Source: Lepidodermella squamata (Eukaryota; Animalia; Gastrotricha). Taken from it: DNA of 64,000 nucleotides. The translations under genes and the position numbers were made by a program. Location of the stretch: NCBI GenBank assembly GCA_047495785.1, contig JBLDXI010000024.1, positions 1,178,001 through 1,242,000 on the forward strand. The letters are read 5' to 3'. A model generated the notes under the pieces. That model saw only the letters and a list, made by a program, of their open reading frames with translations, had not been told where the DNA came from and did not search any database. Shown piece by piece: positions 26,909 through 53,960 of this stretch (its first letter is position 1; each line of letters begins with the position of its first letter).

Positions 26909-29642
26909 ATGAATTTCAAATTTCGATATTTGCTAGTAAACTTAATGGCTGTAGCAGTATGTGAAAGCAAGCAGATTTTACAGGTAGAAAAATGGCCAAA
27001 CTCACAATGTTTTCGTTAGTTCTGAGCAATTTATTACAGTACTCCTCGGGGCAAACCGGAAGCTTCAAAATCGGATTCATGTTACCCGGTCATCGCACCA
27101 AATACTCCGGTTCGCCAACATCATCAAGGTATGTTGTTGCCAGGAAGTCGCATTTCAGATCTTAGCATTGAGCTTTCAGTAGCAGCTCCTGTGGTGAAAT
27201 TTCGCCATCAGAGGCTCTTTTAGTGTCTCATTTCAAGCGCCTGATCCGAGATGTTGAACTGTCGCAGATACTAGGCCCAGGGGTAAAAATTGGTTTGGAG
27301 GTTCTCGACACATGCGGCTCGGAGAGCTTCGCAACTGCCCAGGCTATTCATTGGCTGAAAAAGCGGGTTAAAAGTGACAACGACTCTGCCGAGCCGCCGA
27401 TTGCCTTTGTCGTTGGGACGTCCTACAGCAGGGTGACTCAAACCATCGCCCCGCTGTTGCAACAGTTCGGCATTCCGCTTATCGATCAAGGCGCTACGGC
27501 TGATATTTTGAGTGATCAGAATCGCTTCAGGATGTTCGCTCGAGTGACAGCGTCTGACAAGTACATGGCCCAGGCTATGGTTGAATTCGTGAAAACGAAC
27601 GCATGGAACTGCGTTCATCTACTCCACAGCGTGGGTCCTTATGGCGGAGCTGGCGCTGAACAAGTCGCTCAGCAGCTCTTGAATTCGAACATTTCAATTT
27701 CGAGCGGTGGACCAATCGCGCTGCCTCTCGATCGTTCTTCGAAGGCAGATTTTGACGCGGCAGTTGCAAGAATAGCCGAGTCCGAATCAGTTCGGATCAT
27801 TATTTGCTTCTGCGAGGCGGGCACAACACTAGGGCTTCTACAAGCTATTAAAGACCGACAGGGATTGGGCAAATATTTCATCATTGGCGGGTGAGTTTCA
27901 TTAGAAATTAAAAAGATTTGCATAAGATGCATTTACATGGGCTGTTATATTGCCATGTTTAACCCTGGAAACACCTTCAGACTAGCTCATTTGAGTCTTG
28001 CAAGTATGCACCCTTTGAAATACCGACTGTATCAGTCGGGGCAACGAAAATCTCAACGTCGAAATTCTGAAAAATTCCAAAATTAAGTCGAGCAGGCTGC
28101 TATTCCGACCTTCGGCTGCGTCTCAGGTCTCCATAGCTAGCCTTCAGGCGAATATTTTCCGCTATCCGCTACAAAGCTCCCAGATATTGTATAATAACAG
28201 ATCAAAGTTTTGCAATCTACACAAAAAACTGAGTTTTTTAATTTCCGAATATCTCCTTGTAGAAAGCTGATTTTCGCAGCCCGTTTTTTCCGATTACAGT
28301 TTCTCAAGTGAAGAATCATCTGGTATTCATGTTAATGATAAATTCGGGAGGAATTATGGCTAAATATAATGTTTTTCGTTAAGCTTGAAGAAAACCAATA
28401 TTATTACAATTTCTCCTTAATGAAAAATGCGAACTTACTTTTTGTGGAGAGTTTTCTGCATGAGTTTCCTCTCTGGTTAATCTGATCTCTATGGTTAGCT
28501 GTAATCAAAACTTGTTCTTAATATTTATTTTAGTGACTTTTGGGGCAAGGAGCTGGATTTGCAAAGTCTGGAAATCATTGCCGATCACGCGATTTCGTTC
28601 AGAACAATCACGACTACGCCAAAACCTTTGACAGTTGAAATTGGAAACATCAGCGATATCAACTCATGGATAAGAGAAAGCAAAGACACGGATCCTTGGT
28701 TGAATGGTAAGAAATTTTTAATCATTGAGTACTTGGACTTGGGAGACGAAAGGCTTCGTTGAAGCATAAGGGTATATTTGCCTGTGCGAATTTTCCTTCA
28801 TTCACAGTATTCAATTATTTGAGCTTGGTTTCGAAATTCTTTGAGTTTTAGTTTCTTGTCATGGGAAATGATCTTGTTATGATCGTTGATGCTGACTGAA
28901 CTACGTTCCCTTATTCCTAGAGTGTCTGGAGACCCTGAAAAAGTGCACGTTGGATCCTACTAATACAAATTTCCATAAATGTGGTGAGTTTTGCTTTTGT
29001 TAATTATGACCTGTAAATACAAAAATTTTCTTACTCCAAGAGGAAACTGAGTTCAAAGTCACCGATCTACCCTTATCGGACTGGGTTAATTCAGTCAGCA
29101 GCGCCTTTTACGCCGGTGCTTTTGCTATGAAAGCCCTGTTTGACGAGAAATGCCGCTCAATACCAGGCGCAGACTGCCGAAAGTTCGATTCAGAAAATGA
29201 CGGTGTCAAACTGTTCCAACACATTGGGAACGCCACAATCCCATTGCAAGGTGGTGGGAGATTCAGCTTCTACCTCGGCCGGGAAGGTTTTCCGCATTAT
29301 CGCATAAATCGGTATGCAATCGAACACGGCGAAAGTGGTACCAATTACATCTACCGGCAAATCGGAACTTGGAATGTCACTAACAAGTTCGATTTCAATC
29401 CAACTTTTGACACATCGGAATATCGGGCGCCTAATGATGTCGTCTGCGCCCGGCCTTATCACAACGAATCCTGGATCCGAGCCCCCATTGTACAAGGCGC
29501 ACTTTCACCTACGATTCTGTGCGGCCAAATCCCTACGATTATCGATAAAACGATTATTATTAATAACAACAGTGTGATTCTACCGGTGGTTACCACGATA
29601 CTCTCAGTCGCGATTCTGGCTTTGATGTTTTTAACGCAGTGA
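26909..29642 (+). CDS. Venus-flytrap receptor copy 1, truncated within the TM helix with no kinase (decoy or pseudogene)
   Basis: Signal exon MNFKFRYLLVNLMAVAVCES at 26909 and the same exon series as copies 2 and 3. Homology stops at ...VAILAL (~29626) and the frame ends MFLTQ*. Confidence 0.75.
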
Positions 29643-32638: not shown

Positions 32639-35600
32639 ATGAATTTCAAATTTCGATATTTGCTAATAAATTTATTGGCTGTAGCAGTATGTGAAAGCAA
32701 GCAGATTTTACAGGTAGAACCATGGCTAAACTCTCAATGTTTTCGTTAGTACTGAGCAATTTAATACAGTACTCCTCAGGGCAAACCGGAAGCTTGAAAA
32801 TCGGATTCATGTTACCTGGTCATCGCACCAAATACTCCGGTTCGCCAACATCAGAAAGGTATGTTGTTGCCAGGAAATCACATTTAAGATCTTAGCATTG
32901 AGCTTTTCAGCAGCTGCTGCTGTGGTGAAATTTCGCCATCAGAGGCTCTTTTAGTGTCTCACTTCAAGCGCCTGATCCGAGATGTTGAATTGTCGCAGAT
33001 ATTAGGCCCAGGGGTTAAAATTGGCTTGGAGGTTCTCGACACATGTGGTGCGGAGAGCTTCGCAACTGCCCAGGCTATTCATTGGCTGAAAAAGCGGGTT
33101 AAAAGTGACAACGACTCTGCCGAGCCGCCAATCGCCTTTGTCGTTGGGACGTCCTACAGCAGGGTGACTCAAACCATCGCCCCGCTGTTGCAACAGTTCG
33201 GCATTCCGCTGATCGATTATGGCGCTACGGCTGACATTCTGAGTGATCAGAATCGCTTCAGGATGTTTACTCGAGTGACAGCGTCTGACAAGTACATGGC
33301 CCAGGCTATGGTTGAATTCGTGAAAACGAACGCATGGAACTGCGTACATCTGCTACACAGCGTGGGTCCTTATGGCGAAGCTGGCGCTGAGCAAGTCGCT
33401 CAGCAGCTTTTGAATTCGAATATTTCAATCTCGAACGATGGACCGATCGCGCTGCCTCTTGATTATTCTTCGAAGTCAGATTTTGACGCGGCAGTTGCTA
33501 GATTAGCCGAGTCTAAATCAGTTAAGATCATTATCTGCTTCTGCGAGGCGACAACAACACGAGGGCTTCTACAAGCTATTAAAGACCGACCGGGATTGAG
33601 CAAATTTGTCGTCATTGGCGGGTGAGTTTCATTTGACATCGATAAAATTAAGATTGGACACTTTGCCGTAGGGCCCCAACACGAATGTTGAGGTTGCAGC
33701 TCTAGATATCGCGAAATAAATCTCCCGAAATATCGATATTGGATTCCGCAGAATCCGACTATTTATTATCATGATTAAGGCGCACCGAAGTCCGTCGCCC
33801 AATTTTGAAACCTGCAGCGCACGCGCGCAGCGCAATTCTTAATCCCGCGCTCAATTTTAAGGTGTGCAGCGCAAATGTTTACTTTGTAACCGTAATCACA
33901 CGCGCGCAGCCGGAAATCAATATTTTGGCAGCCGAAATTTTAAACTTTGCAGCGCAATTATTTATCCACCTTAATATCAATTTTCTCTCCATAAAAGCAT
34001 TTTGAAATGATTTACATGTTTCCCGATAATGGCCCGAGCATATATGGCAGCGCTCGAGGCTGAACGAAGAAAATACCCACCCAAGCATCAAGCATCACCC
34101 AGGTTTCTGTAAATTTCGAATAGGCCGGGTCGGGGACGGAAGAAGAGACATGCGCTGAGCTTCGTGATGAGAAGCTCGTGATGAGACGCGAGACGCGCTT
34201 GCATGAAGAATAGAGGTGTTAGTGTGGTTACTCGTCCGAATCCATGACTGGCTGGGAGCCATTCATGATTAACTTCATAAATTACCGATACAAAAATATT
34301 GCTACGCGAAAATTCGAGGGCGCTGAAAATGAGGTCAATAACACGGTTACTAGTTCAGGCCATGCGGCGCCATTCGAACACCTCACAACGTATCTGCCCT
34401 ATTCGTCTCCCCTTTTATAGCCATCGGTGGCTCACGTGCAACCACTACCTAGAACCGGCCGTTGACCCTGAATCGCCGCCGCCGGTTGAAATTCCAAAAA
34501 TACAATGGAAACATATGTTCCTCCTGGTTCATCGAAAACTGCCCAGCCGCTTGTAATCGCGATAATACTTGTAAAAAGTGACTTCTCAATCGCTTTTTGA
34601 TAAATTCGGGGAATAATTTCACGTCTACACAGATATAACAGATATATCATAAATGTATTGCGCGCTAAGTAAGGTCAGTTGAAGAGCCAATCTTGCCTGT
34701 TGAGCCGATATCGATTCCAAGTATTAATTTTAGAAATCATTGATATTTTCCATATCAGCCAACATTGAGGATGTCTCTATCCGGCTGATGGTAGCAGATA
34801 GCTAAACTAAAAATCGCGGTGCCATGAAGAGCATCGATATCAATGAAAATATGGAATTTTTTTCAAATTGCAAACAATCTGAAAAATTTAATTACAACAC
34901 CCTCTCAACCCTCAAACTTAGTGCTGTATCCTCAATTTCAGTTACGCAAATATATGTTGTACGCCTATAGGGGATTTAAGCCTTTAGAGTATGAGCATTG
35001 TATTTAACCAAAATAATGGCCAAACCGTGAGGGTGACTATCGATCATCATATATCAATCGATTTTATTTAGAAGCTATGACATCCAAGAGAGGGCAGCTT
35101 GACAATGTTTGAAGGAAAAAGCAACAGATAATTTCAGGACAGGTTCAGATTTAGGACAGGAAAAGTGAACACAGTGAGACGAAACAAAGGTTTGGACCAT
35201 TCATCGTTTTAATATGTAGCAGTGATCAGTCAACAATTTGGATCAGTAGTATATAGTGTGTAAAAATAATAAAGATAATATTAAAACAAAATCTCAACAA
35301 CTTCATAAAAGGCAGTAGCAGCTCATAATAGCTTCACAACAGTAAAAAATAGAGTGCAATCAATTTATTGAAGTGCTAAACTAGAGGCATTTTTGTTGTA
35401 GAAAAAAGCGTGAGCAATTGAACGGAATATGTCAGCTGACTCGGCCTGCCGTGCCTCAATAGGCAGTTGATTCCACAGTTCGGGACCTCTGTAACTCAGA
35501 CTAAGCATTTCTCGTTTTGAGTCGCATTTCAGCTTGAACATGGGTTCGGAATTTCGAACCTCGTATCGGGGAGGCGGGTTCAGACAAAAAAGCGCTTGCA

Positions 35601-38600
35601 TTGCAGCCGGTGCTTGCTTGTTAAGGCACTTCCATATGAAGGTGGCCAGGTGGATGGCGTGTTTTTGTTCCACGTCAACCCAGCCAAGGCGATGTCGCAG
35701 TGGTTGAGCATCAGCGAGCGGATGAGCGCCACAAATAACTCGAACTGCTCGGTCTTGCGTCGATTGAAGCCTGGCCAGTGTGGTCGGGGCAGCTTGGCCC
35801 AAGGTCAGGTTACCGTAATTCAAGTGACTAAATATCAAACCATTGGCCATTAAGATAGCAGTCCTACGACTTACGAACTTCGAGGCCAGCTTGAGAACAA
35901 ACAAACCTCTTCTTGCTTTGCTTTTGGCACCATTTATGTGCTTCTTGAAAGATAGTTTATTGTCGATCGTAAAGCCAAGTGTTACCATTGCACTTGACGG
36001 CTTAACAATTGCGTCGCCGATTTTAATACAGAAATCCGGAGCCGTAGGCATCGCGCATTTCAATATCAAAAATTGCGACTTTTTACCGTTAACCTGCAAG
36101 GAGTTGGATTTCAACCAGCAACAAACCCGATTGATTTCCTGTTGAAGAACCGATCTGAGTTCGTTGACGTTCCGACTGGCGAAATAAATTGTTATATCGT
36201 CTGCGTATTGTTTGATTCCGCAGCGCGTAACGACGAGTGATAGTTCATTTACGTACACTGTAAACATAAGTGGCCCTAAAACTGAGCCCTGAGGCACACC
36301 ATGGTGAATTTCTTCAAAGGCAGATAGTGCGCTGTTAATCTTTGTAGCCTGTATTTGATTGCTGTAATTAAGGGCTATCGATTGGTGCCAAATCGAATTG
36401 CGCGCGGAAATTTTGGAAATATGATTTTTGGCCAAAATGTTGCGTTTTTTGGCCAAAACTTGACCTTGAGTGTGCCGCGTGGACTTCGATTTGGCACCAA
36501 TCGATAGCCCTTAATTACAGCAATCGATTGATATGTGATGATCGATTGTCACCCTCACGGTTTGGCCACTATGACAGTTTAAAATATTGCTTAAGCCTAT
36601 ACCGTATAAGCTTAGATCCTCTATAGGCGTACAACATATATGAACCTTCAAAATAATTAAATAATCATTCTTCAAATTAGATGAGCTGAAATAAAAACCT
36701 GTTCTTAACATTCATTTCAGTGACTTTTGGGGCACGGAGTTGGATTTGCGAAATGTGGAAATCGTTGCTGAGCGTGCCATTTCGTTCAGAACAATCACGA
36801 CTACGCCGAAGCCTTTAACAGATGAAATTGGAAATATCAGCGATATAAACTCGTGGATAAGAGAAAGCTCCTATCTCCGCAAAGACACAGATCCTTGGTT
36901 GAATGGTAAGAAGTTTCAAATGACTGAAAAGAGAGAGCCTGAACTAAAAAAGAATATAGGCTCGTTGAAGCATCCGTGTCTCCAGCTTTTTATTCAGTTT
37001 TTTTTATTTTAGTATCCACAGTATTCATTTTTTGAACTTACACAATTTTTATATTATAAGACCTGAAACTTCCTTGGGTTTTGGGTTTATGTATGGTGAA
37101 CATTGAGCTTTTCCTATTCCTAGAGTGCTTGGAGACCTTAAAAGGATGCACGTTGGATCCTACGAATATAAATTTCGATCAATGCAGTAAGTTTTGTTTG
37201 TAAATTATTCTGCGGACATTTAAATATGTATTCTTTTCAAGAGGAAACTGAGTTCAAAGACACCGATCTACCCTTATCGGACTGGGTGAATTCTGTCAGC
37301 AACGCCCTTTACGCCGGTGCTTATGCTATGAAATCCCTTTTCGATGAGAAATGCAGCTTAACACCTGGTGCTGATTGCCGAAAGTTCGATCCAGCAAATG
37401 ACGGTGTCAAACTGTTCCAACACATCAGAAACGCAACAGTCCCATTGCAAGGTGGCGCAAGATTCAGTTTCTACCGCGGCCGAGAAGGTTTCCCGCTTTA
37501 TCGCATCAATCGCTATTCAATCGAACGCGGCGGTGGTAGTACGAATTACATCTACCGCCAAATCGGAACTTGGGATGTCAATAATAAGTTCAAATGGACA
37601 GCCGACACATCGGAATATCGGGCACCTAATGATGTCGTCTGCGCCCGGCCTTACAGCAACGAGACCTGGATCCGAGCCCCCATTGTTCAGGGCGCACTTT
37701 CGCCAACGATTCTGTGCGGTAGTCAAGGCTACGGCACTACGATTATCCATGAACCGCAGATTACTATCAACAACAACAACAACAACAATGTAATCCTACC
37801 GGTGGTTACAACGATACTCTCAGTCGCCATTCTAGCTTTGATCATCGCTGTGGTGATAATTTACCTGAAATTTCAGCGGGAACCTGACCAGAAACTAGAT
37901 GACCAGACAGCCTTGGAAATTTCGCGTTTTACTCAGTATCATTTCGGAAATTGCCCTGGACTGACAATGGACGAAAAAGTAGAATTACGAGACGTTTTGC
38001 AGACCTATTACATTCCAAACGATAGGCTATCAATTTCAACCGAAGCCCTAGGCGAAGGCCATAAAGGTGTCGTCTACAAAGGTAAGATGAATGTCAACGG
38101 GGTGTGGCAAGACGTAGCAGCAAAGCAACTAAAAGGCGGCAGCTCGATGGAAACTGCCAAATTTCTGCGAGAAGGTAGTGTTATGCGCGGCTTCGACCAC
38201 CCTAATGTGCTGAAGCTACTCGGCATCAACATTTTGGCGAACAATGCCGCTCAGATTATAGTGCCGTATATTCCTAATGGAAATTTGCGCGATTTTCTCG
38301 CGACTTACGGTCATTCGTTTATGGAGAGTGAAAAAATCAATCTGTGCCTCCAAATTTGCACGGCGATGGAGTACATTGCGGCGAAACAGTGTGTTCATCG
38401 CGATCTGGCGTGTCGCAATATTCTTGTCGAATCGCGGACCTACATCAATATTGTTTTTCTTGCTGATTTCGGCCTGTCCAAGCAGCTCAATGAAAGTGAT
38501 TACGTGAGGCCAAGCGCGGAAGGAGCTCCTCTGCCGCTCCGCTGGTGCCCACCTGAAGCCTTAATAGGTGGTGCATACGATGAGAAGAGTGACGTATGGA

Positions 38601-39048
38601 GTTTCGGCGTTGTTTGCTGGGAAATTTTTAGCAACGGCGACAAACCGTATCCCGGACTGAGGAATGATGAAGTTTTCAGCCGTGTCATGACACACCCTGG
38701 GGGCTATCCCGATTTGCCGGCAACTTCTCCGCAAGATTTGTAAGTTTAACTGACGCTCAACAGAGTTAGCGCACCTAATTTTTTGCTGTACTATATTTTA
38801 GCTACGATGCAATCATGAAGATATGTTGGTTCAGAGATAAGGCACGAAGGCCAACTTTCAGCGAACTCCGCGAGCGAATACAACAATTTCAGAAGTGTCG
38901 TAATTCTCCAATGAGTTCCGCCTCTTCTGGATTTCCCAGATACTCCCGGCAAGCGAGTCAAAATTCTTCGCATTTAGCCGCCAGCTGCTCTCGGCAAGCG
39001 AGTCTTAATTCGTCGCAATTAGCAGAAGAACACGGTGTGTTGGTGTGA
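32639..39048 (+). CDS. Venus-flytrap (mGluR-type) receptor tyrosine kinase, copy 2 (VKR-like architecture)
   Basis: Signal peptide and class-C-GPCR-type flytrap (LDTC, VVGTSYS, YGAT, LSDQNRFRMF, TASD, GPYGEAG, CFCE). Single TM VILPVVTTILSVAILALIIAVVIIYL, then a tyrosine kinase (GEGHKG, VAAK, HRDLACRN, DFG, LPLRW, SDVWSFGV). Last intron ~38741-38802. Confidence 0.88.
34950..36642. mobile_element. Foldback MITE (~390 bp when reconstructed) split by a LINE insertion
   Basis: 34950-35063 is the reverse complement of 36523-36642, and 36357-36396 is the reverse complement of 36485-36525. Confidence 0.75.
35064..36356 (-). mobile_element. 5'-truncated non-LTR retrotransposon (CR1/L2/Jockey-group RT C-terminal half)
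   Basis: GVPQGSVLGP, YADD, a LGFTIDNKL thumb motif and PELWNQLP. Flanked by a duplicated GATT. Confidence 0.85.
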
Positions 39049-40879: not shown

Positions 40880-41581
40880 TTATTTATTTATTTATTTATT
40901 TATTTATTGAGCATAATCCCATAGTTGAGAGCTCGACGTGGAAAAGGTGCATTTCTAAAATGTTTCGTGCAGAGAATCGAAGTCAGTTCAGGCCAGGTCA
41001 TCAGTCAAAACAAAATAGGACATTAAATCAACAAATAGACAAAATAATCAACAATTTAAAAGATGTTTATATACAAGTTGTCGGCAGTCGTTGGCGGTTG
41101 AGCAGGCTTTCATGCCGCATTTACAATCAGGCAAAGTGCCGTCGTATTCGAGAATGCCAATAGGTTTGTGCTGTGTGCAGTGAAAGTAGATGGGCAGAGA
41201 GTTGAACAAAGCCGGTCCTCGGTAGCTGAGACGAGCTTTGCCGTAGTCGATTCGAGCTTTAGGAAGCTCGAAGGTGAGGTGAGCGTTGCGCAGTTGTCGA
41301 GCGGGTTGTTTCCTGGTAAACAAGTTGCAGATAGCATCCGGGGCTTCACCTATTATGCTCCTGAACATTAAAGTTGCCAGGTGTACGTCGCGTTTGCCGT
41401 CCAAGTCCAACCATCCGAGCTCTTTGCGTAATGGCGCCACGGGAGCGTCCATGGACGCATTCATGATGATTCTGACAGCTCGGTCTTGTAGCTTCTGCAT
41501 TCGTTCGAGTGAAGTTTTGCAGGCCTCGCCGAGCAATATGTCGCAGTAGTGGAGGTGAGAGAAGACAAGGCCATTAGCCAT
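40880..41581 (-). mobile_element. 3' fragment of a non-LTR retrotransposon with an (AATA)n tail
   Basis: MANGLVFSHLHYC...LQDRAVRII...LGWL...LSYRGPALFNSLP is homologous to the 35365 element. A tattta repeat tail lies at ~40880-40908. Confidence 0.8.
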
Positions 41582-43217: not shown

Positions 43218-46200
43218 ATGAATTTCAAATTTCGATATTTGCTAATAAATTTATTGGCTGTAGCAGTATGTGAAAGCAAGCAGATTTTACAGGTAGAACC
43301 ATGGCTAAACTCACAATGTTTTCGTTAGTTCTGAGCAATTTATTACAGTACTTCTCAGGGCAAACCGGAAGCTTGAAAATCGGATTTATGTTACCTGGTC
43401 ATCGCACCAAATACTCCGGTTCTCCAACATCATCAAGGTATGTTGTTGCCAGGAAGTCGCATTTCAGATCTTAGCATTGAGCTTTCAGTAGCAGCTCCTG
43501 TGGTGAAATTTCGCCATCAGAGGCTCTTTTAGTGTCTCACTTCAAGCGCCTGATCCGAGATGTTGAATTGTCGCAGATATTAGGCACAGGGGTTAAAATT
43601 GGCTTGGAGGTTCTCGACACATGCGGCTCGGAGAGCTTCGCAACTGCCCAGGCTATTCATTGGCTGAATAAGCGGGTTAAAAATGACAACGACTCTGCCG
43701 AGCCGCCGATTGCCTTTGTCGTTGGGACGTCCTACAGCAGGGTGACTCAAACCATCGCCCCGCTGTTGCAACAGTTCGGCATTCCGCTGATCGATTACGG
43801 CGCTACGGCTGACATTTTGAGTGATCAGAATCGCTTCAGGATGTTTACTCGAGTGACAGCGTCTGACAAGTACATGGCCCAGGCTATGGTTGAATTCGTG
43901 AAAACGAACGCATGGAACTGCGTACATCTGCTACACAGCGTGGGTCCTTATGGCGAAGCTGGCGCTGAACAAGTCGCTCAGCAGCTCTTGAATTCGAACA
44001 TTTCAATTTCGAGCGGTGGACCAATCGCGCTGCCTCTCGATCGTTCTTCGAAGACAGATTTTGACGCGGCAGTTGCAAGAATAGCCGAGTCTGAATCAGT
44101 TCGGATCATTATTTGCTTCTGCGAGGCGGGCACAACACTAGGGCTTCTACAAGCTATTAAAGACAGGCAGGGATTGGGCAAATTTTTCATCATTGGCGGG
44201 TGAGTTTCATTAGAAATTAAAAAGATTTGCAAAATATGCATTTACATGGGCTGTTATATTGCCATGTTTAACCCTGGAAACACCTTCAGACTAGCTCATT
44301 TGAGTCTTGCAAGTATGCACCCTTTGAAATACCGACTGTATCAGTCGGGGCAACGAAAATCTCAACGTCGAAATTCTGAAAAATTTCAAAATTAAGTCGA
44401 GCAGGCTGCTATTCCGACCTTCGGCTGCGTCTCAGGTCTCCATAGCTGGCCTTCAGGCGAATATTTTCCGCTATCCGCTACAAAGCTCCCAGATATTGTA
44501 TAATAACAGATCTTAGTTTTGCACCTACACAAAAAACTTAGTTCTTTTAATTTCCGAATATCTCCTTGTAAGAAGCTGATTTTCGCAGCCCGTTTTTTCC
44601 GAGTACAGTTTCTCAAGCGAAGAATCATCTGGTATTCATGTTAATGATAAATTCGGGAGGGATTATGGCTAAATATAATGTTTTTCGTTAAGCTTGAAGA
44701 AAACCAATATTATTACAATTTCTCCTTAATGAAAAATGCGAACTTACTTTTTGTGGAGAGTTTTCTGCATGAGTTTCCTCTCTGGTTAATCTGATCTCTA
44801 TGGTTAGCTGTAATCAAAACTTGTTCTTAATATTTATTTTAGTGACTTTTGGGGCAAGGAGCTGGATTTGCAAAGTCTGGAAATCATTGCCGATCACGCG
44901 ATTTCGTTCAGAACAATCACGACTACGCCAAAACCTTTGACAGCTGAAATTGGAAACATCAGCGATATCAACTCATGGATAAGAGAAAGCAAAGACACGG
45001 ATCCTTGGTTGAATGGTAAGAAATTTTTAATCATTGAGTACTTGGACTTAGGAGACGAAAGGCTTCGTTGAAGCATAAGGGTATATTTGCCTGTGCGAAT
45101 TTTCCTTCATTCACAGTATTCAATTATTTGAGCTTGGTTTCGAAATTCTTTGAGTTTTAGTTTCTTGTCATGGGAAATGATCTTGTTATGATCGTTGATG
45201 CTGACTGAACTACGTTCCCTTATTCCTAGAGTGTCTGGAGACCCTGAAAAAATGCACGTTGGATCCTACTAATACAAATTTCCATAAATGTGGTGAGTTT
45301 TGCTTTTGTTAATTATGACCTGTAAATACAAAAATTTTCTTACTCCAAGAGGAAACTGAGTTCAAAGTCACCGATCTACCCTTATCGGACTGGGTTAATT
45401 CAGTCAGCAGCGCCTTTTACGCCGGTGCTTTTGCTATGAAATCCCTTTTCGATGAGAAATGCCGCTCAATACCAGGCGCAGACTGCCGAAAGTTCGATTC
45501 AGAAAATGACGGTGTCAAACTGTTCCAACACATTGGGAACGCCACAATCCCATTGCAAGGTGGTGGGAGATTCAGCTTCTACCTCGGCCGGGAAGGTTTT
45601 CCGCATTATCGCATAAATCGGTATGCAATCGAACACGGCGAAAGTGGTACCAATTACATCTACCGGCAAATCGGAACTTGGAATGTCACTAAAAAGTTCG
45701 ATTTCAATCCAACTTTTGACACATCGGAATATCGGGCGCCTAATGATGTTGTCTGCGCCCGGCCTTATCACAACGAATCCTGGATCCGAGCCCCCATTGT
45801 ACAGGGCGCACTTTCATCTACGATTCTAATTCCTACAATTATCGATAAACCGGAGATTATTGTTAACAATAACAACAGCGTGATTCTACCGGTGGTGACC
45901 ACGATACTCTCAGTCGCCATTCTTGCTTTGATCATCGCTGTGGTGATAATTTACCTGAAATTCCAACGGGAACCACCTGACCACAAACAGGACAAGACAG
46001 CCTCGGAGGTTTTGCGTTTTACTGAATATCATTTCGGAAATTGTCCTGGTCTGAAAATGGACGACAAAGCAGAATTACGAGACGTCTTACAGGCCTACTT
46101 CATACCAAACGATCAGCTATCAATTTCAAACGAAATCCTAGGTGAAGGCCATAAAGGTGTGGTCTATAAAGGTCAGATGAATGTCAACGGGGTGTGGCAA

Positions 46201-47094
46201 GACGTAGCCGCAAAGCAACTAAAAGGCGGCAGCTCGATGGAAACTGTCAAATTTCTGCGCGAAGGCAGTGTCATGCGCGGCTTTGACCACCCTAATGTGT
46301 TGAAGCTACTCGGCATTAACATTTTGGCGAACAGTGCCGCTCAGATTATAGTGCCGTATATTCCTAATGGAAATTTGCGCGATTATCTCGCGACTTACGG
46401 TCATTCGTTCGTGGAGAGTGAAAAAATCAATCTATGCCTCCAAATTTGTGCTGCTATGGAATACATTGCGGAGAAACAGTGTGTTCATCGCGATCTGGCG
46501 TGTCGCAATATTCTTGTCGAATCGCGGTACTACATCAATATCGTTTTTCTTGCTGATTTCGGCCTGTCCAAGCAGCTCAATGAAAGTGATTACGTGAGGC
46601 CAAGCGCGGAAAGAGCTCCTCTGCCGATCCGCTGGTGCCCACCTGAAGCCTTAATAGGTGGTGCATACGATGAGAAGAGTGACGTATGGAGTTTCGGCGT
46701 TGTTTGTTGGGAAATTTTCAGCAACGGCAAAAAACCGTATCCAGGACTTAAGAATGATGATGTTTTAAGTCTTGTTATGACACACCCTGGGGGCTATCCT
46801 GATTTGCCGGAAAGTTGTCCTCAAGATTTGTAAGTTTAACTTGACGCTCAACAGAGTTAGCGTACCTAATTTTTTGCTGTACTATATTTTAGCTACGATG
46901 CAATCATGAAGATATGTTGGTTCAGAGATAAGACACGAAGGCCAACTTTTAAGGAACTGCGCGAGCGATTACAACAATTTCAGAAGTGTCGTAATTCTCC
47001 TATGAGTTCCGCCTCTTCTGGATTTCCCAGATACTCCCTGCAAGTGAGTCGAAATTCTTCGCATTTAGCCGAAGAAAACGGTGTGCTGGTGTGA
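43218..47094 (+). CDS. Venus-flytrap (mGluR-type) receptor tyrosine kinase, copy 3
   Basis: Same 7-exon layout and motifs as copy 2, with an intact kinase (HRDLACRN, DFG, LPIRW). Ends in ENGVLV. Confidence 0.88.
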
Positions 47095-47438: not shown

Positions 47439-50400
47439 TCAGCCTTTGTTCCGAGACAGAATTGAAATAGCAGACGCCGCTCTCTTGATCCAATCGACAA
47501 AGGCCGAGACTTTGGTGTAAACACCGGGTGCATTCGCTGCTCCGCAATCGAAGCCCCAGCTGAAAATGTTGTCATCAAGTTTTTCTGTTTTTTTGGGACA
47601 TGATTACCTGATCACTCCCTGCAATGTAAAAGCGCTGCCTTGAGGGCATACCAAAGGACCACCGCTGTCTCCTTGACAGGCATCCGTTCCACCCTATCCA
47701 AAACGAATTTTACTAGGAACAAATTGCATAAGAACGTGAATTGAACCTCTTCAAGATAGCCTGCGCAAATCATTCGATCAGTAAGCGCCATTTCCATTTT
47801 GTGACTGGAATTTCTACATCTTTCGTGACCGACTATTGGTACCTGAAACTTGGAGGTTAGAAAAAGGCTATACCAGAGAAATTACCAGAAAAACCTGAGC
47901 TTCTTTCAGATCTCCTTCTCCTGCCGAATTTTTCGTCTCGCCATAACCTGTTATCGAGCACATTGAACCGCTGATGACGTCTTCGCCCGATCTAGGCAGA
48001 CAAACTGGGAAAACGTGGCGATTGAAGCGAACAGGGGTCGATAGACGCAAAAGGGCAATATCATTATTGAACTTTCGGTTGAATTTATCTCCGTATTCGG
48101 GGTGAATTGTTATCGATGCGACTTTCAATGGGCCGACTTCAGTCTCCTCGCCTAAAGAACGGCGAATTTTCGCGAGGTAAATGCTCCAATATTGAGTGTC
48201 ACTTGACCTGGTTTATAAATATAACATGAAGTTTTACCGTAACGTAGTGTAACTGTGAAAAAAAATTATTTCCCAAGGTTATCGGTTCCGTATTGGTTCA
48301 AATAACCCCACTCACTAATAATTTCCCATCCGTGATAGTAGCCCAGGGCCATAGAGCCAAGTCGGTTCAAAATCATGAAATGAGCGATTTTCGAATAAAT
48401 TTACAATTATTTTTTAATTTCGAGTTTGAAACTTTAGTAGCCCGGGCTGCTACGGATACAAATAATATAAATACGGTAAATTTCGGATTTTTGCTTGAAA
48501 ATTCTGAAATTTCAGGCACAGGGGGCCAAGATGATTCCTGGATTTCCTGTAAATTCTGAGAATTATTACATTTTTACCCGATTTTTTGCAATTAAAAAAG
48601 CTGAACATTGAATTGAAAATTTTGCGGTTAAGTAAATATGTGCGCTCAGCGTTGCATAAAAATTCAAGTGCAAAGCCAAGAGAATTCCAAGTTTCTCCAT
48701 GTCCAAATTTATTACGGTAATTAACTAACGTTTCTTTGAAGCAATGAGCAGCGGTGAGGACATAATTAGCGCTGATCAAAGACCCGCCGCAAACATGCAA
48801 GTCGTTGAACCGGAGACTAGCTTGCCAAGGCCATACATCTGCGTTCGTGACTGAAACACCGCCCACTATTCGAGCTTTCTGTTCAGGCGGCGAATCCAAT
48901 GGCACAACTTCGATGCCGAATTCGTCGAATTCAGGTTCAGATGGAGCCAATCGACGCCGCCGAACCAATTGCTGTGCCATGGCGTAGTCGTTAGCCTCTC
49001 CGGCACTGATTCCACCTTTCAAACCGCATTTTCCAGCTGGGGATGTTAAATTGCCAATTAATTCAAAAATAGCGATCAATTTAGAAAAAATTATAATGCA
49101 AAGACTTCGAAAATTGGCACAAAACGCAATCTGAGAGGTTCAAAGGAATCATAGAATATATCCATCCCCAAAATTCTAATAAATTGAAAATTAATAATTA
49201 ATAAAATTGTAATAAAATTTCGCCAATTTATTAACTAGAAAATCCTGTGATAATCCAGCATTCGTTTTTCCCGAATTTAATTAAGTAGTCGAAACATTGA
49301 ACTCACAAGAAGCGTCGTAAAATTCAGGCTCGGGTGCCCTCGTCGTTGTCGCTTTCGGTCTATTGTCAATAATTATTATTCGTGGCTTTTCGGTTCTTGG
49401 CGGCTCAGTAACAGCAACCCTAGGTATTTCGTTATTAACCGGAATATAAATCGGCCGTTCGATTATCTGCGGTTGTTGTGGCACGACGTGATGAATCACC
49501 ACCTCACGAGGCGGCTGAGGGTAAACAGGTGGTGGCATTGTGGCTACAACGGGCGGGGGTGAAGGTAAGGTGAACATTTCAGGAGGCCTCCAGGTGAAAA
49601 TTGGCGGCATATTATTCGCGAAAGGATTGAAAGGTCGCCAAGCATTATCTTTTCCATCCTCGGGAAATATAGGCGGCTTCATGGTGTGATGAAAATTAGG
49701 CTGATGGTAGCCCCCAGGAAAAAACGGGTTATGGAAGTGTTGATGATTCATTCTCCCGTTATTCGGCCGATGGTGAAAACCGGCTGCATTACCCCAAGGA
49801 TTCCAAGGGTTGTTGCTATTGCTGTTATCATCGTCATCGCCATCCTTTGTGTTACCATTATTAGGTAAGCCAGAAGGTTGCCAAGGATTGAAGGCTTGGT
49901 GGTTATAGAAATTCGGGGCGTTAGGACCAAAGCCAGGTATTTGATCGCTATTGAATCCTCCTGATGGCCACGAGTTGTTTCTCGAACCGAAATTTGGGCT
50001 AAATCCGCCAAATTGGTTATTGAACCCTGGGAAATTATTCGGTCCGCCAAATTGCCCGGGATAAACCGGTCTATTGTTTCCACCGCTTTGCCATGGTTGC
50101 AGAGGGTTTCCTCCGAAATTTCCGATGTTGAAAGCATTCAGATTTCCTCCGACCTGGTTTGGTGAATCATCATCGTCATCATCATCATCGCCACCAGGGC
50201 GATGGCCAAATTTAGGGGCAAAAGGTCCGATTCCGAAGTGAGGATTGCCCATTTGACCGAAGCCATCTGGGCGACCGAAATGTTTGTTTTGTTTCGTTGC
50301 CCCGAAAGTTCCGGGGAAGCCGAACCCACCTGTGAGAAAGCTGTTACCAGGTTGCCCAACGCCATCCTGATTACCTCTTCCTTCATTATTTCCATAGCCC

Positions 50401-50940
50401 ATGGGATTTTCAAAACCACCGAAGCCGGCCAAGCCATTGATACCACCAAGAAAGTTACCGTTACCCCCAAAGCTACTTCCCAAGTTATTCTCGAATCCTC
50501 CCGGGGCCCGAGGTCCCATGTTCCCGAAACCCCCAATCCCGCCGTTGGCAAAACCACCCTGCCACATGTGACCTCCGAAGCCTCCGAAACCGCCGCCAGG
50601 ACCAGGACCATTAACATTACCAAAACCGCGGCCGAATCCGCCGTGGTTAGGATGATGATTATGGGAACCATGCCGATAATTCTTCGCTATTTCCTTGAGA
50701 TCGTTGCGAAAATGCTGGCTTCGATCGTTTGAACGTGCCTTCTCACCTGTTGCAGTAAGATATTTCAGCAATAAGGCTCAATTTTCAACTGAATTTTGTC
50801 CTGGAATTTAGCTTTGACTCGAAAAGCCCGAAAAAACTTCGAAAAATTGGTGAAAATTTACCGTGATTGGACGAAGCCTCGCTGAAATCGGCTGATAGAA
50901 TTAACATAGCGACTAGAAAGACCTTAATTTTGGCGGTCAT
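47439..50940 (-). CDS. Secreted S1 serine protease with a long G/F/N/P-rich low-complexity N-terminus
   Basis: Signal exon [22 protein letters not shown], a large low-complexity exon (~49308-50746), GKCG and R-IVGG activation site. Motifs [39 protein letters not shown] and PGVYTKV are spread over ~7 exons. Confidence 0.88.
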
Positions 50941-51292
50941 TTGGAGATTTTCGATACAATAGAATCATTTTATTTATTTTTATTTCAACTGCGGTGGCGA
51001 TTACTCATAACACATGTATTTACTCAACCTGCTCTTTGCCTAGGAAAATTGATAATTTGTTCACCTGCTGGTAGTAGGTGAAATTATTTTATTCTGGTTT
51101 TTAGCTCTAAAAATTTCCGGTGTTTATATTAAATTTCAATAACATTTGTTGACACGTGCGAATTTTTGAAATTTTTAAAAATGATCACGCGAATAAGAAG
51201 AACGCGTGCCGTTTAAATGTTAACGTTGGACAAGTATTAATTTTTTTTCTATTTCGTGGCTCATTCTTTTGTCATTTTCATTCAAATTTTAC

Positions 51293-53960
51293 ATGGCGGG
51301 CAGTGATGAAGTTCTCGCCCTGTTGATCTCGCAGGATCTGGGCCAATTCTTCGAGAAAATTCGCGACGACCTTCTAGTCACCCGTCTCTGCCATTTCGAA
51401 GATGTTAAAGCAAAGGACTTGACTCGAATCGGCATGTCAGACCCGGCGGTTCGCCGGCTGTTAAAAGCCGCGAAACAGCAAAGTGCTACCTCGTCGCCGG
51501 CCTCAGGTAAAGGCAGCCCCATCTCAATTTTCGCGACAATTCGGCAAAAAATTAACAACTCAAAACGGCCGAGTGTTGTGCCGTCGAAAAATTGCGATGA
51601 TTTTACATTAACAAGACCGAGCTCGAAAGCATCGAGCAACGGCCCGACTTCGGCGTGTATCATACCCGCGAATGACCTTGAACTTTACGAGACGATTGGC
51701 ACCGGTAATTTCGGCCTCGTTCGACGTGCTGTGTGGCGCCGGTCTGGCGGCCAAGGTGGCGATCAAATTGTTGCGGTTAAAATTTTGCGCGTCGACATTG
51801 CCGCCGATAAACAGGTCCTGATCGACTTAGTTCGCGAAGTTCAAGTCATGCATAAACTGGACCATCCTAATCTACTGAAGCTACACGGCGTTTGCTTCGA
51901 CTCGCAAAACATGCTCATCACCGAGTTGGCCCCAGTCGGTTGTTTAGTTCAGTACCTTCGCGGTAAAAAAGATGCGATCCTTGTCACGAAAATTTTGTCA
52001 TTCGCGCGGCAACTGGCCAATGCGTTGGATTACCTGGAGACTAGGAAATTTATTCATCGCGACATTGCTTGCCGAAATGTCTTGCTAGCCAATGAAGATA
52101 CTATCAAACTTGGCGATTTCGGACTGGCGAGGATTCTACCTACTGATGATGTACCCGAAAAGCGTGATATTTTTAATCTAAATTGCTAATTTTTTCAAAT
52201 TTTCAAATTTTTAAAATTAATAAAAATTAATAAAAAGGCACTAAAAAATCAGGAACAAATTCTAAAAAATTCTAAAAATGCACATGAGTATCGACAATTA
52301 GCTGTCTAACCTTTGGCTTCAATTTCAGATTTTTATGTCAAAATATTTTTTTAAATTATTTTTTAAAAGCATAAATTATTCTTCAATGCTCCTTGCATTA
52401 TTTTTTCAGTCTAATTTTTTCAACAGATTTTTACTCATTTTTAGGCTCACTACGTTTCGCACTATCAATGCAAAATTCCGTTCGCTTGGTCGGCGCCGGA
52501 AAGCTTGAAATACCGCGAATTCACTCACGCCTCGGACACGTGGATGTACGGTGTTGCAGTTTGGGAAATGTTCACATTTGGCGAGGATCCATGGCGCGGG
52601 CTTAAAGCCACCGAGGTTCTCGAAGAGGTCGAAGCTAGACGGCGGCTTAGCAAGCCAATCCGCTGCCCCATTTCGATCTACCAAATGATGCTTCAATGCT
52701 GGCGGTCTGACCCAGAAAATCGACCTACTTTCGCCGCTATTATTGAATACTTGGCACTGAGAGAATTTATCGAGGTCAAAACAGTTGCGAACTACGTCGA
52801 TACTGGCGATGAGCACAAATTAAAATTCGACAAGGGCGATAAAATTATTGTCATCGATGGGCCAAGTGAAAAAAGGTGCAAAACAAATAATTTGAGGTGG
52901 ATTTTTTTATTTTATTTTTTATTATTTTTTATTTTTAGATGGTGGCTCGGTCAGAATAAGCGAACAATGCAATGTGGTTATTTTCTTCGCGCTTCAATCG
53001 AAGTTCCTCGCGAACTGACGAAGGAAGATATCAGCCGGCCGTTACCCGGCACTTTTGTCCACAACAACCGGACAGATAGCCGAACGCAGCGAGCCGCTTT
53101 AGTCGACATTCCAACGCCAGCGTCAGAACTGAGCGATAATTACACAACGCTGGAAAGCGGCGAGCTGGCGATGGTTATCCATCCGACGTCACTTCGCACC
53201 CGGAAACATGTCTCGAGCCGGTCGAAAGTCAGCGAGAGTTCGGAGGTTTCGATCAGACCTACCGCGCCACCTGTGCCCTCGACGTTTCTCGACGCCCAGC
53301 AATTACCGCTATTTCAGCCACCGGCAGGGCAGGACTACGCTAATTCTACAATGAACCGCGTTAATGGCAACATTTATTTCAACGAGAAGACACAAATTTT
53401 CGGGCCGAATGGGGAACATCGGGATTTATTGGAATTTTCGCGAAATAGCTCACCCTCCTGCAAAAGCTCAGACGATTGGGCGCTGGAGACAACGCAAAGC
53501 AGCGGTAAAGTATCGGCGAAATCAACGCCGAGCAAGTCTTTGACGCGATCTCCGGCTAAATATTTTCGAGATCTCCTGAACAGCGCGTTGGGAAAACGCG
53601 GTTCGGTCAACGCGTCGCCCAAGTCGAAAAATTCACCGTCTCAACCGTCGTCGCGAACTTCGCCTACGCCGAACCCGGCTTCGGAGCCGATTTTTGCGAG
53701 TCAACGGCTTTTTTCTCAGATTGGCGGTTCCAGGTTCAGTTTAGCAACAGAGCCGAATGAAAGCATGCATCCTATCACATCGTCGACCCCAGCCCTGAGA
53801 AAGGTTTCGGTTTTTAGTTATCGCAGTTGATGAAATAAAAACTTGATTATTTCACCAGGTAACGGACAACGTTAGCCCACACCAGAATATGCTGGTTGCC
53901 GAACTCGTTAAAAAAGTCCGAGGCCGTCGAATTTCATCGAGCATCGCTGATCAAGAATGA
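51293..53960 (+). CDS. TNK2: ACK-family non-receptor tyrosine kinase (SAM-kinase-SH3-CRIB-like)
   Basis: SAM-like LLVTRLCHFEDVKAKDLTRIGMSDPAVRRLL, then GTGNFG, HRDIACRN, KIPFAWSAPESLKYREFTHASDTW, SH3 WWLGQNKRT and CRIB-like ISRPLPGTFVH. Three GT-AG introns. Confidence 0.88.

Follow-up and report, generated by a model that had tools for sequence, protein, structure and literature searches.

A candidate amino-acid-gated receptor tyrosine kinase family with an mGluR-type Venus flytrap in the gastrotrich Lepidodermella squamata

A locus of the gastrotrich Lepidodermella squamata raises the question of what a tyrosine kinase would sense if its ectodomain were a Venus flytrap of the kind found in metabotropic glutamate receptors (mGluRs). 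The stretch analysed, hereafter the window, is 64,000 nucleotides long (assembly GCA_047495785.1, contig JBLDXI010000024.1, called C24 below, positions 1,178,001 to 1,242,000 of the forward strand; positions given without a contig name are counted from its first letter). It holds three copies, A, B and C, of a flytrap gene, and B and C continue into a tyrosine kinase. Our best explanation, held with somewhat better than even confidence on the evidence of sequence, is that copies B and C encode receptor tyrosine kinases (RTKs) with an mGluR-type flytrap that would be closed by a free L-amino acid other than glutamate, and that they belong to a family independent of the published Venus kinase receptors (VKRs).

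Gene architecture and flytrap type

Copy C was modelled from open reading frames (ORFs) and splice signals as a gene of six exons on the + strand (43301-47094) with 922 codons. The exons total 2769 nucleotides, or 923 codons with the stop; the reading frame closes, and all introns are of the GT-AG type. All searches of copy C were run exon by exon, not on the spliced protein. Its parts are as follows.

Exon 1, 43301..43437, + strand: start codon, signal-peptide-like hydrophobic stretch and first flytrap strand (LKIGFMLPG); ORF with GT donor, conserved in copies A and B.
Exon 2, 43489..44202, + strand: flytrap lobe 1 and part of lobe 2; Pfam ANF_receptor at 1.3e-31, PDB mGluR7 at 2e-27.
Intron 2, 44203..44842, + strand: GT...AG, 640 bases, interrupting the motif GG/DFW (slash at the intron).
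Exon 3, 44843..45015, + strand: equivalent of mGluR1 D318 (GAC, 44844-46) and remainder of lobe 2.
Exon 4, 45230..45292, + strand: 21 codons (ECLETLKKC...HKC) of the flytrap linker region, placed by frame and splice signals.
Exon 5, 45350..46829, + strand: flytrap end with the SDW motif, linker, membrane helix, juxtamembrane region and most of the tyrosine kinase.
Exon 6, 46893..47094, + strand: kinase end (YDAIMKICW...RPTF), short tail and stop (47092-94).

The start of exon 2 is set at 43489, since the acceptor at 43488/43489 is the only one that fits the phase 2 donor of exon 1. This exon carries the equivalents of mGluR1 C67, C109, S165, T188, D208, Y236 and E292 together with the R78 position. 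The paralogs, too, keep its 14 codons 5' of 43532 (SSSCGEISPSEALL), which correspond to the 'CGE' with which class C flytraps begin. At the site of intron 2, the homologs L001 and P0271 have no intron and read a continuous AGDFWGK.

The architecture of copy C is that of a VKR: one Venus flytrap outside the cell, a tyrosine kinase inside it and one membrane helix between them. In exon 5, some 60 linker residues, which contain no cysteine-rich domain, lead from the flytrap end to the membrane helix, the hydrophobic VILPVVTTILSVAILALIIAVVIIYL, which lies between flytrap and kinase. Neither NCD3G nor 7tm_3 gave a Pfam match in the exons of copy C, and tblastn with NCD3G and seven-helix queries found matches only at a separate locus on contig C15 and none in the array to which the gene belongs. 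The exon 5 kinase matches Pfam PK_Tyr_Ser-Thr at 2.8e-65. Judged on its motifs (GEGHKG, VAAK, HRDLACRN, DFG and ESDYVRP, with a single activation-loop Tyr), the kinase is catalytically intact.

To which class of flytrap the ectodomain belongs is indicated by both sequence and fold matches. A HMMER comparison of exon 2 with solved flytraps returned mGluR7, 8, 1, 4 and 5 at E values of 2e-27 to 1e-23, with mGluR7 first and mGluR7, 8 and 1 together at 2e-27 to 4e-25, and the best 60 of the 99 matched PDB structures are those of mGluR, T1R3 and CaSR. A preliminary description of the locus had proposed a structure prediction superposed on the mGluR1 flytrap as a check. We modelled residues 1-470 of P0271, a natural single-ORF relative that covers the equivalents of exons 2-6, with AlphaFold2 and the alignment A2 described below (predicted local distance difference test score 81, predicted template-modelling score 0.86). 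In Foldseek this homolog model proved mGluR-like, matching the ectodomains of mGluR5, 2, 3 and 1 at template-modelling (TM) scores of 0.72-0.77 over ~440 columns, and the matches listed in its top 50 are mGluR or CaSR only; the individual residues of copy C were placed by alignment. A profile search with the flytrap over 1.8 billion representatives yielded 3446 flytrap relatives. Among the best 150 of these, a kinase occurs in P0128 alone, a member of the same family as copy C, and all ten single-flytrap matches sampled were receptors of the ANF_receptor, NCD3G and 7tm_3 type, i.e. G-protein-coupled receptors (GPCRs) of class C. By these matches, the flytrap of copy C is of mGluR type.

The profile search was topped by poly-flytrap proteins of 5-10 domains, which we do not regard as closer relatives; they rank first because the scores of their many domains add up. 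Such public proteins (P0121-P0123 and P0125) have 2500-3900 residues, 6-10 tandem ANF_receptor flytraps and scattered NCD3G; they may be genuinely poly-flytrap or may reflect gene models in which tandem genes were fused.

The binding cleft and its probable ligand

Residue numbers were bridged to mGluR1 through P0214, a vertebrate mGluR1 ortholog (E 2e-279 to PDB chain 1ewk_A). The chain index of 1ewk_A plus 32 gives the residue number, as checked on C67, Y74, R78, S165, T188, D208, Y236, E292, D318, R323 and K409. The exon pieces of copy C were then read in A2, a 40-sequence alignment with 30 class C flytraps and family relatives, in which the six backbone-contact residues of copy C fall in the same columns as their equivalents in P0214. 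The positions correspond as follows, with the mGluR1 residue named first.

S165: Ser83 of exon 2 (GTSYS), codon 43736-38.
T188: Thr106 of exon 2 (YGAT), codon 43805-07.
D208: Asp126 of exon 2 (TASD), codon 43865-67.
Y236: Tyr154 of exon 2 (GPYG), codon 43949-51.
E292: Glu212 of exon 2 (CFCE), codon 44123-25.
D318: Asp, first full codon of exon 3 (GG/DFW), codon 44844-46.
R78: Leu in exon 2, codon 43529-31.
K409: Trp of the conserved SDW motif in exon 5, codon 45391-93.
Y74: Glu in copy C.
R323: Glu in copy C.
S186: Gly in copy C.

The first six of these equivalences had been proposed by eye in the preliminary description, and both HMMER and the A2 alignment with P0214 uphold them. The motifs named there (GTSYS, YGAT, TASD, GPYG, GEAG, CFCE and GG/DFW, the last split by a GT-AG intron at 44202/44843) are all present in copy C. 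Its remark that no counterpart of R78 or K409 is visible was likewise correct, as Leu (43529-31) and Trp (45391-93) occupy these columns. Its coordinates for the flytrap, 43532-44860, cover the bulk of exon 2, the whole of intron 2 and the opening bases of exon 3, but begin 14 codons too late; the codons missed include the C67 equivalent and the R78 position, and the K409 position also lies outside that interval.

The R78 and K409 positions hold Leu and Trp in all copies of the window, and Ile and Trp or Phe in the relatives. Since the A2 columns place Leu and the Trp of the conserved SDW motif there, the absence from copy C of the pair that binds the distal carboxylate is, by this alignment, real. 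In all paralogs checked in the genome, down to 27% identity, the five contacts of exon 2 do not vary; the sole exception is the genome's class C GPCR locus, where Glu has changed to Asp at the E292 position. The metagenome relatives keep all six backbone contacts, the five of exon 2 being identical in L001, and P0128/P0271 and P0272 keep the motifs.

Because the backbone contacts are kept and hydrophobic or aromatic residues stand at the R78 and K409 positions, a free L-amino acid other than glutamate is probably the most economical ligand of the copy C flytrap, and an RTK gated by such an amino acid is a reasonable reading of the gene. The preliminary description had suggested either such a ligand or a peptide terminus. 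The first suggestion is consistent with the mGluR-type flytrap, the full set of contacts, the loss of R78 and K409 and the intact kinase. The second fits poorly: because the cleft has kept its contacts for carboxylate and ammonium alike, neither the N- nor the C-terminus of a peptide is a likely ligand. The cleft would still accommodate an amino-acid moiety joined through a gamma linkage. A nutrient or chemosensory role, as also suggested there, is one that we would only conjecture.

The ligand class, dimerisation and activation that we infer can be put together as follows. The whole ectodomain of copies B and C would be one mGluR-type flytrap, in which Ser, Thr, Asp, Tyr, Glu and Asp would grip the alpha-carboxylate and alpha-ammonium groups of the ligand, and Leu and Trp would stand in place of the two basic residues that grip the side-chain carboxylate of glutamate in mGluRs. 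The flytrap would be closed by some non-glutamate L-amino acid in free form, or by a closely related compound whose amino-acid moiety is free. Closure would re-orient a non-covalent flytrap dimer and bring two kinase domains together, and the paired kinases would phosphorylate each other on the activation-loop tyrosine. Re-orientation of a dimer by flytrap closure, and trans-phosphorylation, would be expected by analogy with class C receptors and VKRs. Any dimer of copy C would be non-covalent, because there is no cysteine in the loop that bears the inter-subunit disulfide of mGluRs.

Several points weigh against the amino-acid reading of copies B and C and should be set beside it. The folded protein, P0271, is only ~46% identical to copy C in exon 2, and the cleft-facing orientation of the six contact residues is taken from the alignment. 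The splice junctions are predicted from sequence logic and from homologs that lack those introns. The R78 region is the least securely aligned: an indel of two residues lies close by, and Lys19 and Arg20 come five to six positions further on. There is no Arg or Lys within three positions of the aligned site. The tree test that separates the kinase from those of VKRs (see below) is only moderately strong (p=0.022). Moreover, class C flytraps have the backbone contacts from their ancestor, so that structural reasons may partly account for the persistence of these contacts, and the conserved motif residues did not stop the hormone OEH in the Aedes VKR, or Ca2+ in SmVKR2, from being reported as the activator (PMC5601475).

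The last two points lead to the strongest alternative, which we nevertheless consider unlikely: that the flytrap is real and its activator is not a free amino acid. The activator could instead be an ion such as Ca2+, a docking peptide or protein hormone, or the amino acid could serve solely as a permanently bound co-factor; the backbone contacts would then be kept by descent and for the integrity of the cleft. It is in favour of this alternative that SmVKR2 responds to Ca2+ and the Aedes VKR to OEH, a hormone of 86 residues, despite their motif residues (PMC5601475), that CaSR, which itself has the backbone contacts, is among the sequence and fold matches, and that many secreted peptide precursors are encoded in the window and its surroundings. 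The pattern of conservation argues otherwise. The six contacts are kept at a family identity of 25-47%, while the equivalents of Y74, S186 and R323, which are neighbouring positions of the cleft, vary among family members; fixed contacts with varying neighbours are the pattern expected for a bound amino-acid backbone with a diversifying side-chain pocket. In addition, the VKRs with reported non-amino-acid ligands keep far fewer of the contacts (PMC3703292, PMC4026697).

It is quite improbable that the receptor still responds to glutamate (or aspartate), with the side-chain carboxylate held by other basic residues such as Lys19/Arg20 of the first helix or the Lys of DFWGK. The flytrap of copy C does have features of group I mGluRs such as CFCE, basic residues occur in sequence near the R78 and R323 regions, and the indel around R78 leaves some room in the alignment. 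R78 is, however, present in most of the aligned mGluR-like GPCRs and K409 in the mGluR-type sequences read, and both are replaced (Leu/Ile and Trp/Phe) in every family member. The substitute basic residues are not conserved in the family, where the R323 equivalent is E, S or N. The same argument has been accepted for VKRs, on which glutamate is inactive (PMC3703292).

Copies in the window and their constraint

Apart from copy C, two copies lie in the window.

Copy A, 26992..29642, + strand: 2.7-kb partial duplicate of copy C, 96.9% identical including introns.
Copy B, 32722..39048, + strand: complete paralog, 92% identical to copy C in exon 2 and 91% in the kinase.

Copy A has an intact flytrap, and its frame stops in the membrane helix (a stop codon follows ILALMFLTQ), so that it is without a kinase. 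The changes of YGAT to QGAT and of GEAG to GGAG that had been noticed earlier in a 'copy 1' are those of copy A, this kinase-less partial duplicate. They correspond to Y to Q at 27487-89 (mGluR1 Y185) and E to G at 27646-48 (E238), and neither is a listed ligand contact. With B as the outgroup, both arose on the A branch, which in exons 1-2 carries 15 synonymous against ~5 non-synonymous changes; the polarisation might be distorted if B and C have exchanged sequence by gene conversion. The ratio of non-synonymous to synonymous rates (dN/dS) is 0.17 for A versus C and 0.30 for B versus C. Because synonymous changes outnumber non-synonymous ones on its own branch, the kinase-less copy A looks constrained by purifying selection, and instead of being dead it perhaps acts as a decoy or as a partner subunit.

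Intron 2 of copy B measures 3.1 kb, against 0.64 kb in copy C, because of the insertion of a reverse-transcriptase element (35365-36456, minus strand). A retroelement fragment without a Pfam match (41048-41581, minus strand) resembles the C-terminal part of that element. Just downstream of copy B, the segment 39930-40440 is GC-rich (~50% versus 42% around it), with Arg/Pro/Ser-rich ORFs overlapping on both strands.

That these copies are decaying pseudogenes or assembly artefacts without function seems very unlikely. Copy A is truncated and a retroelement sits in an intron of copy B, as might be seen in decay, but every exon of B and C is open, dN/dS is well below 1, the catalytic and pocket residues are intact, and even the truncated copy shows the excess of synonymous change given above.

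Independence from Venus kinase receptors and wider occurrence

VKRs unite a flytrap, a membrane helix and an insulin-receptor-like kinase and are activated by L-Arg, and their flytrap is closest to that of GABA-B receptors (PMC2680970, PMC3703292, PMC4026697). L-Arg acts on AmVKR and SmVKR1 (PMC2680970, PMC4026697). They retain mainly the S165-equivalent Ser and an Arg of the amino-acid motif, with Tyr at the K409 position, and their amino-acid gating has been argued from these same S165 and K409 positions (PMC2680970, PMC3703292, PMC4026697). The VKR signature consists of S66, E92, R107 and Y406 together with the motif GY(V/I)WFLPxWL (PMC3703292). Of these residues the copy C family shares the Ser only; the remaining three are T, D and W in the family, and KFFIIGGDFWGKE replaces the motif.

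A canonical VKR, P0320, was recovered in a word search with P0271 and provides a direct comparison. It carries GPGCSE, YGAES, FFRTVP and GGYVWFLPPWF, and its relatives are 45-67% identical over flytrap and kinase. They include proteins of Capitella, Lottia and Tribolium, for which VKRs have been published, and extend to hemichordates; one of them bears the name 'NeuroparsinReceptor'. Against PDB, the P0320 flytrap matches GABA-B1 at 2e-54 and mGluR5 only at 8e-13, the reverse of the pattern for copy C. Exon 2 of copy C is 26% identical to this flytrap over 80 residues, and between the copy C family and canonical VKRs at large only the kinases match, at ~33-40% identity.

The trees separate both domains. 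In the flytrap tree, from which two mis-cut VKR rows (Nasonia and Tubulanus) were omitted, VKR and GABA-B-like flytraps split from class C GPCRs and the copy C family at 100/100, and the family is sister to the genome's own class C GPCR at 92/94. Forcing the flytraps of the family and of VKRs into one clade is worse by 49.7 log-likelihood units (approximately unbiased (AU) test, p=1e-5). In the tree of kinases, one clade at 100/99 unites the 12 rows of the family and another, also at 100/99, the 8 rows of VKRs; InsR, Ror and MuSK group with the VKRs, away from the family. A joint kinase clade is rejected as well (AU test, p=0.022). Since flytrap and kinase are both placed apart from VKRs, the same layout arose from different parents. 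Judging from these trees, the fusion of an mGluR-type flytrap with a kinase in the copy C family took place independently of the one seen in the published VKRs.

Our initial and fairly confident reading of copy C as a canonical VKR was rejected on the flytrap and kinase trees, the AU tests and the GABA-B-like nature of the VKR flytrap. The same evidence leaves hardly any room for copy C-type genes being fast-evolving orthologs of the canonical VKR: they do share the layout of flytrap, one membrane helix and tyrosine kinase without a cysteine-rich domain, relatives do keep a DYY activation loop as in insulin-receptor-type kinases, and no other VKR was found in the genome, but VKRs of annelids, insects and hemichordates stay 45-67% identical where the family reaches only ~33-40% (kinase) and 26% over 80 residues (flytrap), the flytraps are GABA-B-like in one and mGluR-like in the other, a joint clade is rejected for both domains, and the signature residues and GY(V/I)WFLPxWL are missing from the family. 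When the flytrap of the canonical VKR was compared with the genome, only matches of 26-30% identity were obtained, GABA-B-like in look and none near a kinase; for this reason a canonical VKR seems to be absent, within the limits of this flytrap search.

In the genome searched (121 Mb), the flytrap-kinase combination occurs at no fewer than eight loci. Three further complete genes lie upstream of the window at C24:1136000-1165000. The pair on the + strand is 89% and 84% identical in exon 2; the remaining gene, at ~47%, is on the minus strand. The three copies of the window are accordingly part of a six-gene array over ~95 kb, which consists of five complete genes and the truncated copy A. More flytrap and kinase loci are found at C16:47000-57000, at C103:71000-80000 and in a second array at C24:5172000-5199000. 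The flytraps of these distant loci are 25-36% identical, with flytrap and kinase pieces alternating on one strand, and the kinase of the C16 gene is very close to the metagenome protein P0272. At C2:104000-118000, the minus strand carries four or five flytrap-like pieces in succession, and the stretch retrieved gave neither a kinase nor a seven-helix match; this row may be a multi-flytrap gene or a kinase-less gene cluster.

Outside the genome, the searches made found relatives only in three metagenome lineages, L001, P0128/P0271 and P0272. A word search with exon 5 gave one true relative (P0001), the other matches being generic kinases, and one with the whole of P0271, limited to a capped set of candidates, was dominated by Eph receptors and recovered P0272 and the VKR P0320. 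In the literature, we found no paper describing such an mGluR-type flytrap-kinase family.

The window encodes other genes as well. A cytoplasmic tyrosine kinase gene of the ACK/TNK type lies at 51269-53830 on the + strand, with SAM_TNK, an intron-split kinase and a long Ser/Pro-rich tail. On the minus strand, an ORF of 496 residues (49281-50771), rich in Gly, Asn, Phe and Pro and with an Asp run, has no Pfam match; trypsin-like protease exons (48450-49079 and 47868-48128, minus strand) adjoin it.

How the copy C family compares with known systems can be summarized from its domains. The VKRs (SmVKR1/2, AmVKR, AaVKR; Ahier 2009, Vanderstraete 2013) resemble it in having one flytrap, one helix, an active kinase and no cysteine-rich domain, and also in keeping the S165-equivalent Ser with an aromatic residue in place of K409. 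They differ in their GABA-B-like flytrap, which has only Ser and Arg of the 8-residue motif and E, R and Y where the copy C family has T, D and W, and in a kinase that groups with those of the insulin receptor, Ror and MuSK, whereas that of the family forms its own clade. VKRs are ~1250-1450 residues long and mostly single-copy, while copy C-type genes encode ~920 residues and occur in tandem arrays. Activation by L-Arg and dimer-dependent signalling are published for VKRs, and the copy C family would presumably work by the same logic.

Among solved structures, mGluRs (mGluR1, PDB 1EWK; groups I-III) are the closest to the family by sequence and fold, with the C67-C109 cysteine pair, CFCE and the six backbone contacts in common. 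The family is without their cysteine-rich domain, seven-helix domain, R78, K409 and the cysteine of the inter-subunit disulfide, and its output would be a tyrosine kinase. CaSR, GPRC6A, T1R1/T1R3 and fish 5.24 likewise combine the backbone contacts with a changed distal pocket, and their ligands include non-glutamate L-amino acids (literature cited in PMC2680970). They are coupled to G proteins, however, and their kinship to the copy C family is apparent only at the level of the class C flytrap. An ectodomain of the periplasmic-binding-protein type has been joined to a kinase fold more than once, as in UTK12 of Monosiga, RTKS of Salpingoeca and the receptor guanylyl cyclases (PMC3703292). Copy C has neither the inactive kinase-homology domain nor the cyclase domain of the receptor guanylyl cyclases, and the choanoflagellate kinases are set beside it by their description.

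The idea of an amino-acid-gated flytrap RTK is already published with the VKRs; what is added here is an mGluR-derived family with a complete amino-acid signature. In practical terms this addition carries modest weight for now, pending a ligand and evidence of expression. Flytrap sensing of amino acids is coupled to G proteins in class C GPCRs, to ion channels, to cyclases and, in VKRs, to a tyrosine kinase. In the copy C family, the coupling to a kinase has arisen again from different flytrap and kinase lineages, which makes it a clean case of convergent domain shuffling. Because it keeps the complete backbone-binding signature of mGluRs, the family may be a more interpretable model than VKRs for how flytrap closure switches a single-pass kinase and for the residues that set amino-acid specificity, and the tandem paralogs together with the kinase-less copy A offer natural variants for such comparison. 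A more far-reaching reading, which we consider less likely than not, is that gastrotrich-type animals evolved a second kind of flytrap RTK from an mGluR-type sensor and then multiplied it in tandem arrays, with kinase-less partners such as copy A among them. With a fixed core for the amino-acid backbone and a variable side-chain pocket, the paralogs would form a repertoire of nutrient or chemosensory amino-acid receptors signalling by tyrosine phosphorylation rather than through G proteins.

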